Of a stretch of 64,000 nt of DNA, positions 37,222 to 38,471 are shown one piece after another. The stretch comes from Zygnema circumcarinatum SAG 698-1b (lineage: Eukaryota; Plantae; Zygnematophyceae): the NCBI GenBank assembly GCA_037447605.1, contig CM074808.1:2232001-2296000 (forward strand), written 5' to 3'. The notes beneath the pieces were generated by a model. It worked only from the letters and a program-made list of their open reading frames with translations. It made no database searches and had not been told where the DNA came from. How positions within the stretch are numbered: position 1 is the stretch's first letter; the number at the start of each line of letters is the position of its first letter. The position numbers were made by a program, and so were the translations under genes.

Positions 37222-38471
37222 ATGGATCCCGTGGGTTTAGTGAATGAAATTCTCACTCTCGCTTATGAAGCGTTGACGGTGTGGGAGGATGTGAAGTCGC
37301 ATAAGGAGAAGGGCAAGGCGCTGTGCGCTGATGTGAAGTTCCTGCTCTTAGAGATTAGAACTATGGTTGAACAAGACTGCGTAGAGGTAGATGGACTAAT
37401 TCGACTTAAGTCTACCATGCAGAAGGCAATCGATGTTGCTGTGGATTGCACGAAACACTGGACGTACCGAGTGTGCTTTGCCAAAATGATTTTAGCAGAG
37501 CTTCAAGAAGTAAAGTATGGCTTAGAATTCTTCAAGTCGACCTTTAAGATTGTGCTCATGAACAGACGCATCGAAATGATTCACCAAAGCGATCAAGAAA
37601 TGGAGGAGAGAAAATTTTTGCTTCGACGCCTGTCAGGGAAAAGAGCCGACCGAGAAGTTGAGGTGCGTTCTGAGGCGGGGTTGGAGCAGCGCAGCGCTGT
37701 GTGGTGCGGCCATCGGAAGCAGAACGCATGCTCTAAATGAATGCTGAAGATTGGAGAAGATCTCCCTAAGATTTTGCCTGTATCCAGTTACTTGTGCATT
37801 TCCGACAATGCTGACTTGTGATTCCCCTGCGTGCCTTGACTCGTCAGGTGGCAACCCTTAAACAAGAGATCAAGGACGAGTTGAGGGCGGAATCAGTCGA
37901 AAAACAGAAAGGACTAGAAAGGATTGGCGCTGACAACTTTCCTGATGAAGTTCCAATTCTGAGTCGGGCCTCCCCCTCTGGCTTGCTCTCTCCCTCCCCT
38001 CTTTACCCTCCTGGCCTCCTCATTCGCCCCCTCAGACTCGCCACGGACTTATTTGTATTGAATGAAATTCGCAATCTCACTGATAAAATGTCGAGCGTGT
38101 GGGAGGATGCGGGGCCGTATCGAAATCGGGGCAAGGCGCTGTCCGCTAATGTGAATTTCCTGTACGGAGCGATTGAAACTGTTATTAAAGAAGGAAAATG
38201 CGTCGATGAAACTTTAATGGTTCGATTTCGGTCTACGATACAGGAGGCAATCGCTGTTGCAAACAAATGCAGGAGGAGCTTTATGCGAGTCCTTTTTCCT
38301 AAAAATATTTCAGCAGAGCTTCAAGAGCTACATGATGACTTAATCACCTACATGATCGCCTTCTCGGAAAGCCTTGTGAGGGAAATCATTGACAACTTCC
38401 CTAAGACAAACCTGCTCGGACTTGGAGGAGGCTTTGGATCAGTCTACAAAGGCATGTTGGACGGCAATTAA
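37222..38471 (+). CDS. Two-exon ORF (~354 aa) with two tandem MLKL-NTD/RPW8/MCAfunc-like four-helix-bundle domains followed by a truncated RLK/Pelle kinase start
   Basis: Exon 1 is 37222-37662 (147 codons). Phase-0 GT-AG intron at 37663-37847. Exon 2 is 37848-38471. D1 reads MDPVGLVNEILTLAYEALTVWEDVKSHKEKGKALCADVKFLL..RLKSTMQKAIDVAVDC..RVCFAKMILAELQEV. D2 reads TDLFVLNEIRNL..VWED..RGKALSANVNFL..RFRSTIQEAIAVANKC..RVLFPKNISAELQEL. The ORF ends IDNFPKTNLLGLGGGFGSVYKGMLDGN*. Confidence 0.7.

Follow-up and report, generated by a model that had tools for sequence, protein, structure and literature searches.

A transcribed gene for two predicted helical bundles and a truncated receptor-type kinase in Zygnema circumcarinatum: a probable divergent relative of MLKL_N, MCAfunc, and RPW8 domains

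Four-helix bundles of the MLKL, HeLo, RPW8, and coiled-coil (CC) types are executors of regulated cell death, in plants as well as in animals and fungi. MLKL, of which animal and seed-plant forms exist, is defined by the combination of such a bundle with a regulatory pseudokinase. The RPW8/HR proteins are small and kinase-less, consist of a four-helix bundle with a coiled-coil tail, and are fast-evolving, locally clustered, and lineage-restricted. The MCAfunc/UND bundle is modular, its partners being U-box/Arm, PLAC8, or a kinase. The MCAfunc bundle is specific to streptophytes, probably dates from early in their history, and is present in charophytes, where it is joined to U-box and Arm domains; a kinase partner is found in some monocot clades (PMC8049495). 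Tandem CC-CC executor domains are carried by two NLRs of Marchantia polymorpha, Mp3g09180 and Mp3g09210 (PMC11218826). Here, we describe a gene at positions 37222-38471, plus strand, of a 64,000-nucleotide stretch of the Zygnema circumcarinatum SAG 698-1b genome (assembly GCA_037447605.1, contig CM074808.1, positions 2,232,001 to 2,296,000; hereafter the window, to whose numbering all coordinates refer). It encodes two homologous predicted helical bundles, D1 and D2, followed by the beginning of a receptor-like kinase (RLK) of the RLK/Pelle type. On balance, we favor the view that this is a real, expressed, and lineage-restricted gene, a kinase-less tandem derivative of a bundle-kinase gene.

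The gene resembles each of the described systems and departs from each. As in the RPW8/HR proteins of Arabidopsis (PF05659), the bundle is kinase-less, and RPW8 clusters are found among its neighbors in a protein language-model search; unlike RPW8, it has two bundles per chain and a kinase stub, no profile match, and no evident N-terminal membrane anchor. There is a possible parallel to MCAfunc/UND proteins (PF19584), in which a helical bundle stands next to one of several recombining partners, the partner here being the relic of a plant RLK-type kinase; unlike in MCAfunc-kinase proteins, the kinase is cut to 35 residues, the bundle is in tandem, and PF19584 is not matched. The low-confidence model of D1 can be aligned to the executioner domain of human MLKL, and MLKL_N clusters are top language-model neighbors, but there is no pseudokinase and no profile similarity, and activation through a kinase domain is impossible. 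The first-pass annotation of this DNA had likened the gene to the MLKL architecture of a bundle plus a (pseudo)kinase; as the stub is of the RLK/Pelle type, this is an analogy and not membership. We conclude that the gene is not an MLKL orthologue, since what is left of the kinase belongs to the RLK/Pelle type and a pseudokinase is lacking. The Marchantia CC-CC NLRs likewise have two executor-type helical bundles in one protein and come from a non-flowering lineage, but carry NB-ARC and LRR domains, neither of which is present here; CC and MLKL_N-type bundles may be no more than distantly related. The kinase-less RPW8/HR proteins and the tandem bundles of the Marchantia CC-CC NLRs would seem closer analogies than MLKL.

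The open reading frame (ORF), read from the window sequence, encodes 354 amino acids in two exons. Exon 1 (37222-37662, 147 codons) and exon 2 (37848-38471, 207 codons followed by a TAA stop at 38469-38471) are separated by a 185-nt intron with GT..AG ends (37663-37847). The start codon stands in the context gccgccATGg, and the transcribed leader, CT-rich and located at 37159-37221, contains no upstream ATG. The stretch is present in seven public sequencing runs, which come from one organism and three studies; three of these runs (X1-X3) and one run without the stretch were compared over positions 37000-38800. In X1, a 1438-nt contig with a depth of 173 joined 37202-37660 to 37846-38800, with 185 bases skipped at GT..AG borders. 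The joined contig was also present in X2, and loose ends spanning the splice junction were found in X3; in both of these runs the intron was partly retained, as revealed by an intron-bearing 240-nt contig at lower depth. Contig depth over the gene was 55-236, and no coverage of 37000-37121 was observed in any run compared. The run label "RNA" is a guess, and the transcript nature of the contigs rests on the splice and on the missing upstream coverage: because of the spliced junction and the zero coverage at 37000-37121, we regard the contigs as transcripts. Their ends (37159-37202 on the upstream side, and 38603-38640 or beyond 38800 on the downstream side) match the borders of repeats and may differ from the real ends of the transcript. 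Since the exact GT..AG splice is seen in contigs of three studies, we conclude that the gene is expressed. It is transcribed and correctly spliced, and the cleanly spliced ORF of about 354 residues that was proposed in the first-pass annotation, together with its intron, was confirmed by the transcript contigs. The contigs are colinear through the stop codon, and therefore no downstream kinase exons are spliced on.

The predicted product begins with D1 (37222-37575), which was modeled by AlphaFold2 (AF2) as a four-helix bundle with helices at residues 3-24, 29-50, 56-78, and from 80 onward. A charged helical linker starts at 37576-37662, the end of exon 1, where it prolongs helix 4 in a brace- or coiled-coil-like manner, and continues through the first 27 residues of exon 2 (37848-37928); in the model, a single helix spans residues 80-146, with a predicted local distance difference test score (pLDDT) of 83 at residues 121-140. 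D2 (38043-38357) was likewise modeled as a four-helix bundle, with helices at model residues 4-23, 28-50, 57-78, and 85-119. The two domains are 38% identical over 115 residues (BLASTP of exon 1 residues 6-114 against exon 2 residues 70-183, E 1e-21), and nucleotide homology extends over 37238-37524 and 38056-38342, at 69%. The homology of two helical domains of about 110 residues, claimed from the letters alone, is thus upheld, as are the motif blocks by which it was recognized, since NEI, VWED, GKAL.A.V.FL, R..ST.Q.AI.VA..C, and RV.F.K.I.AELQE are all invariant in the alignment. Hydrophobic residues are frequent at the conserved positions and have the spacing of helix cores. In the well-aligned first 100 columns, the only insertions or deletions are two single-codon ones, both in frame, and larger in-frame gaps are confined to the tail.

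New in this analysis is the finding that the ratio of amino-acid-changing to silent divergence (dN/dS) between D1 and D2 exceeds one. In one pairwise comparison over 98 aligned codons, dN was ca. 0.50 and dS ca. 0.26, and the ratio was 1.9 by the NG86 and YN00 methods, 2.1 by LWL85, and 2.9 by maximum likelihood (bootstrap 95% interval 1.14-3.5). An identical codon was used at 35 of the 40 identical residues, and the other codons often differed at two or three bases. In neutral simulations (n=4000), matched for the number of changes and for the share of transitions, the median ratio was 0.84, and no more than 0.4% of the stop-free cases attained the observed value (P <= 0.004); 4-6% of the simulated pairs stayed stop-free. 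A ratio above the neutral expectation with both reading frames intact suggests, as far as one can judge from a sequence comparison, diversifying selection rather than decay.

The last 40 residues of the ORF match the start of plant RLK/Pelle kinases, in the form DNF..N.LG.GGFG.VYKG.L. This stub (38358-38471) runs from the pre-kinase FS..L....NF through the Gly-rich loop to YKGMLDGN and the TAA stop. When it was used as a phmmer query against PDB sequences, BAK1 (E 0.0034), FERONIA (0.009), the lectin RLK LecRK (0.038), and PBL2 (0.054) were matched, followed by SymRK, RIPK, and a LysM-RLK; the same kinase matches were weaker with the whole of exon 2 as query. The Gly-rich loop is present in the plant-type context of RLK/Pelle kinases, with one extra residue. 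The ORF ends 7 residues past the GxGxxG..YKG motif, and about 35 kinase residues remain; they are predicted to be disordered (pLDDT below 50 at residues 123-143 of the model of D2 with the stub). The beta3 Lys, the alphaC Glu, the HRD and DFG motifs, and the activation segment of the catalytic core are absent from the ORF, and no kinase-like ORF was found downstream of the gene in the window. It had been proposed that the domains run directly into an RLK/Pelle Gly-rich loop and that the regulatory kinase was lost; the matches to BAK1 and other plant RLKs and the truncation right after the loop agree with both statements. Three-frame translation revealed an out-of-frame stretch of 28 codons after the stop (+2 frame, QLKRLNEGSPLEMLEDEVGLEAG.., 38465-38548, plus strand), which, by eye, may resemble the kinase region from the beta3 Lys to alphaC; a phmmer search of PDB with these 28 residues returned no match. 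A hairpin with a perfect 18-bp stem and a 4-nt loop is found in the 3' untranslated region at 38546-38585 (DNA fold -21.4 kcal/mol, z -8.3). It sits exactly where any kinase-like reading ends, and (CATG/TGCA)-rich repeats come next.

The truncation also allows another reading, in which the locus is a transcribed relic, a broken bundle-kinase fragment that is driven by a promoter and yields no functional protein. A kinase cut after its Gly-rich loop, with what may be a frame-shifted kinase-like remnant following the stop, would be expected of such a fragment, and so would the location of the gene between the direct repeats of 1.13 kb, the perfect hairpin found at the break, the lack of relatives in sequence and metagenome searches, and the lack, on average, of purifying selection in the comparison of D1 with D2. 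We take this reading as a serious rival, although we consider it unlikely. All 354 codons are open, while a domain pair under neutral change rarely stays free of stops (see above); the two indels in the first 100 columns preserve the frame; dN/dS lies above the neutral expectation; and the positions of the hydrophobic core are conserved. The gene is highly expressed and exactly spliced and has a strong start context, and because the stop codon is in the last exon, the mRNA is no obvious target of decay.

The language-model neighbors provide the strongest support for assignment to an MLKL/RPW8-type family. With D1 and D2 used as single domains, the nearest named ESM-Atlas clusters were streptophyte MCAfunc (PF19584), MLKL_N (PF22215), DUF7792, and RPW8 (PF05659). 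D1 scored 0.93 with 192 of 256 features, and eight of its ten top matches were from the same clan, MCAfunc being the top neighbor; D2 scored 0.93 with 184 of 256 features, and all ten top matches were from the same clan. RPW8 clusters appeared among the neighbors at 0.92 and 0.85. By the calibration of the tool, at least 170 features are shared by nine of ten true family members and by one to two of ten chance matches. At the level of the clan, the neighborhood in feature space is that of MLKL_N, MCAfunc, and RPW8. The feature search with the whole of exon 2 gave no usable match.

Structure comparison gave a less specific picture. AF2 folded exon 1 alone into four helices, the last one 65 residues long. 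When D2 and the stub were modeled with D1 as a second alignment row, the pLDDT was 72.7 and the predicted template modeling (TM) score 0.63, and the bundle itself had a pLDDT of 80-90. Foldseek returned no significant match for the D1 model; its lowest-rmsd (root-mean-square deviation) matches were the human MLKL executioner domain 6zvo_B (TM 0.55/0.56, rmsd 3.2 over 121 columns, Foldseek E ~1) and the CC-R domain of Arabidopsis NRG1.1 (target-normalized TM 0.55-0.60). VIA-align gave D1 a Z of 10.0 with the Sw-5b N-terminal domain, 9.3 with NRG1 CC-R, 9.2 with Rx CC, 9.1 with MLA13, and 8.9 with MLKL, and Z values of 10-11 with designed bundles; according to the tool's own guide, Z below ~13 is common for helical bundles. 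The ESM-Atlas shape search with D1 returned models of fungal PigL_N (HeLo-like) and SesA domains at TM 0.57-0.61. As judged from these models, the fold would be a four-helix bundle that is compatible with MLKL, HeLo, and CC-R domains, though not specific to them.

From these results, we consider it likely that the bundles belong to the MLKL_N/MCAfunc/RPW8 superfamily as very divergent members. Several results weigh against this assignment, or against the broader reading of a functional, lineage-restricted gene. In a Pfam-A hmmscan, no family was matched at E <= 10 with either exon, and the MLKL_N (PF22215), MCAfunc (PF19584), and RPW8 (PF05659) profiles, of the families that the first-pass annotation had named for a check, gave nothing at that threshold. 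Searches of PDB sequences (phmmer and hmmsearch) with D1, exon 2, and a D1+D2 profile yielded no bundle match, and the profile found no MLKL chain. Word-index protein searches were blank for both exons. When the D1+D2 profile was run exhaustively by HMMER over 1.84 billion representatives, a single match was obtained, a 721-residue tandem-repeat protein (P0001), which was matched in ten short stretches and rejected as an artefact; in a metagenome scan, none of 390 pattern matches was confirmed. The libraries searched do not include the protein itself, and the alga's own paralogues may likewise be absent from them; no paralogue or second gene copy, and hence no intact one, was found by tblastn within the 64-kb window. 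The D1 model is of low confidence (pLDDT 59.6), and its Z scores of 9-11 fall in the range common for helical bundles. The better model, that of D2, matched generic bundles alone at Z 8-12 (talin rod, Avd, designed, and copper storage proteins), with no MLKL, CC, or RPW8 entry in the top 50. The language-model matches are leads without E-values, and those of D1 and D2 are mutually dependent. The evidence of expression is at the level of transcripts, the 354-residue product being predicted from the ORF. Finally, the dN/dS estimate comes from a single short pairwise comparison, and multi-nucleotide mutations could inflate it.

Up-down bundles are common, and the silence of the Pfam and PDB sequence searches, the generic matches of the best-modeled domain, and the ESM-Atlas shape matches of D2, which were unrelated bacterial proteins, are what would be expected of a generic four-helix-bundle or coiled-coil protein outside the MLKL/RPW8/MCAfunc superfamily. 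We nevertheless judge this quite unlikely. D1 and D2 each land on MLKL_N, MCAfunc, and RPW8 clusters with feature counts of 180-192, which lie in the range of true members; the natural matches of D1 with the lowest rmsd are MLKL, NRG1 CC-R, plant CC, and fungal HeLo-like domains; and the location in front of a kinase of the RLK type agrees with a partnership known from MCAfunc-type bundles (PMC8049495). The assignment made in the first-pass annotation therefore stands in part: four-helix models, language-model neighbors, and fold matches of D1 speak for it, while the profiles do not match and D2 remains generic. We regard membership of the superfamily as probable; if the assignment fails, the interest of the gene, as one encoding an orphan helical protein, would be no more than local.

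The 1.65-kb gene body and its transcript are bracketed by direct repeats of 1.13 kb (plus strand), whose upstream (36017-37149) and downstream (38795-39921) copies were found to be 92% identical in a blastn self-comparison. A partial copy of 175 bp lies at 38623-38797, no further copies of the 1.13-kb repeat were found in 64 kb, and the upstream copy contains a TATAAATA box near 37000. Tandem repeats of 17/34 nt, rich in CGATA or CGATAC, are found at 37083-37159, just upstream of the transcript start, and at 39855-40020, in the downstream repeat copy; the CGATAC-rich repeats may be a promoter-proximal element. That a gene fragment was captured by a mobile element, with the repeats as element ends, is very improbable, and this long-terminal-repeat or mobile-element reading was rejected. 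Although the 92%-identical repeats do flank the gene body with the transcript between them, only two copies are present in 64 kb, their ends are not TG..CA, ORFs for a transposase, reverse transcriptase, or integrase are absent from the vicinity, and the spliceosomal intron shows that the gene is not a retrocopy.

The segment between the two domains may hold traces of their origin. The sequence ADNFPDEVPIL (37929-37961) follows the charged linker and has DNFP in common with the stub that follows D2; in a local alignment of the linker end ADNFPDEV with IDNFPKTN of the stub, DNFP alone was aligned (P 0.04 versus shuffles), and a relic of a kinase start after D1 is possible, if weakly supported. 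The Pro/Ser-rich segment that comes next (37962-38042) resembles the CT-rich 5' leader in a nucleotide alignment (P 0.02 versus shuffles) and has gccACGga at its end, as against gccATGga at the real start; it may once have been the leader of a second gene copy. With these weak statistics, a former kinase start after D1 and a former 5' leader before D2 appear plausible.

Under the favored reading of a kinase-less tandem derivative, the gene would have arisen by a local duplication and fusion that put two bundle units into one reading frame, and by a truncation in which all of the kinase beyond the Gly-rich loop was lost. The predicted product would be a soluble, all-helical protein of 354 residues that consists of the first bundle, the charged helical linker, the Pro/Ser-rich spacer, the second bundle, and a disordered stub of 35 residues. 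This account of structure and origin is well supported where it is not directly observed. Between D1 and D2, amino-acid-changing sites appear to have diverged faster than silent ones, with both frames still open, a pattern of diversifying selection. Like RPW8/HR proteins, the product would presumably work in the absence of a kinase domain. It could be a module that oligomerises and is directed to membranes, or it could modulate intact bundle-kinase or bundle-U-box paralogues in the same genome, as their partner or decoy. Such an activity, whether as executor, adaptor, or decoy, is what we infer from the features described above. The stronger proposal, that two fast-diversifying MLKL_N/RPW8-type bundles make the protein an active player (executor, inhibitor, or decoy) in an algal cell-death or self/non-self system, we hold to be unlikely.

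The first-pass annotation had placed the gene between housekeeping genes. In a rough check of its surroundings, an upstream exon on the plus strand (31372-31629) gave a weak WD40 match (E 3.5e-4, below the Pfam cut-off), and a downstream gene on the same strand (41253-44772) was found to contain an exon with a C3HC4 RING finger (44554-44772; PF13920, E 5e-14). The downstream gene appears to start with MGCCQS, an N-terminus of the myristoylation/palmitoylation type, and a stretch of 57.6% GC (40000-42000) precedes and overlaps its start. An interstitial telomere-like array of ~56 degenerate CTAAACC copies (35153-35597) lies ~1.7 kb upstream of the bundle gene; read from the other strand, CTAAACC corresponds to TTTAGGG, the telomere repeat of the plant type. 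A CATCCATG / CATG microsatellite is common to 35766-35821 and 2753-2846. Three runs of N, at 1952, 7935, and 19923 and totaling 120 N, mark assembly gaps.

The gene bears on how and when plants gained and diversified four-helix bundles of the cell-death type. It would be an expressed example, from an alga, of a bundle that formerly stood with a receptor-type kinase of plants and was later duplicated and left without the kinase. With its signs of diversifying selection, it would be a tractable case for studying both a possible membrane or cell-death activity of algal bundles and the origin of kinase-less derivatives such as RPW8. If the protein is indeed an active player, birth-and-death evolution and arms-race selection on executor modules would already be found in the closest algal relatives of land plants.

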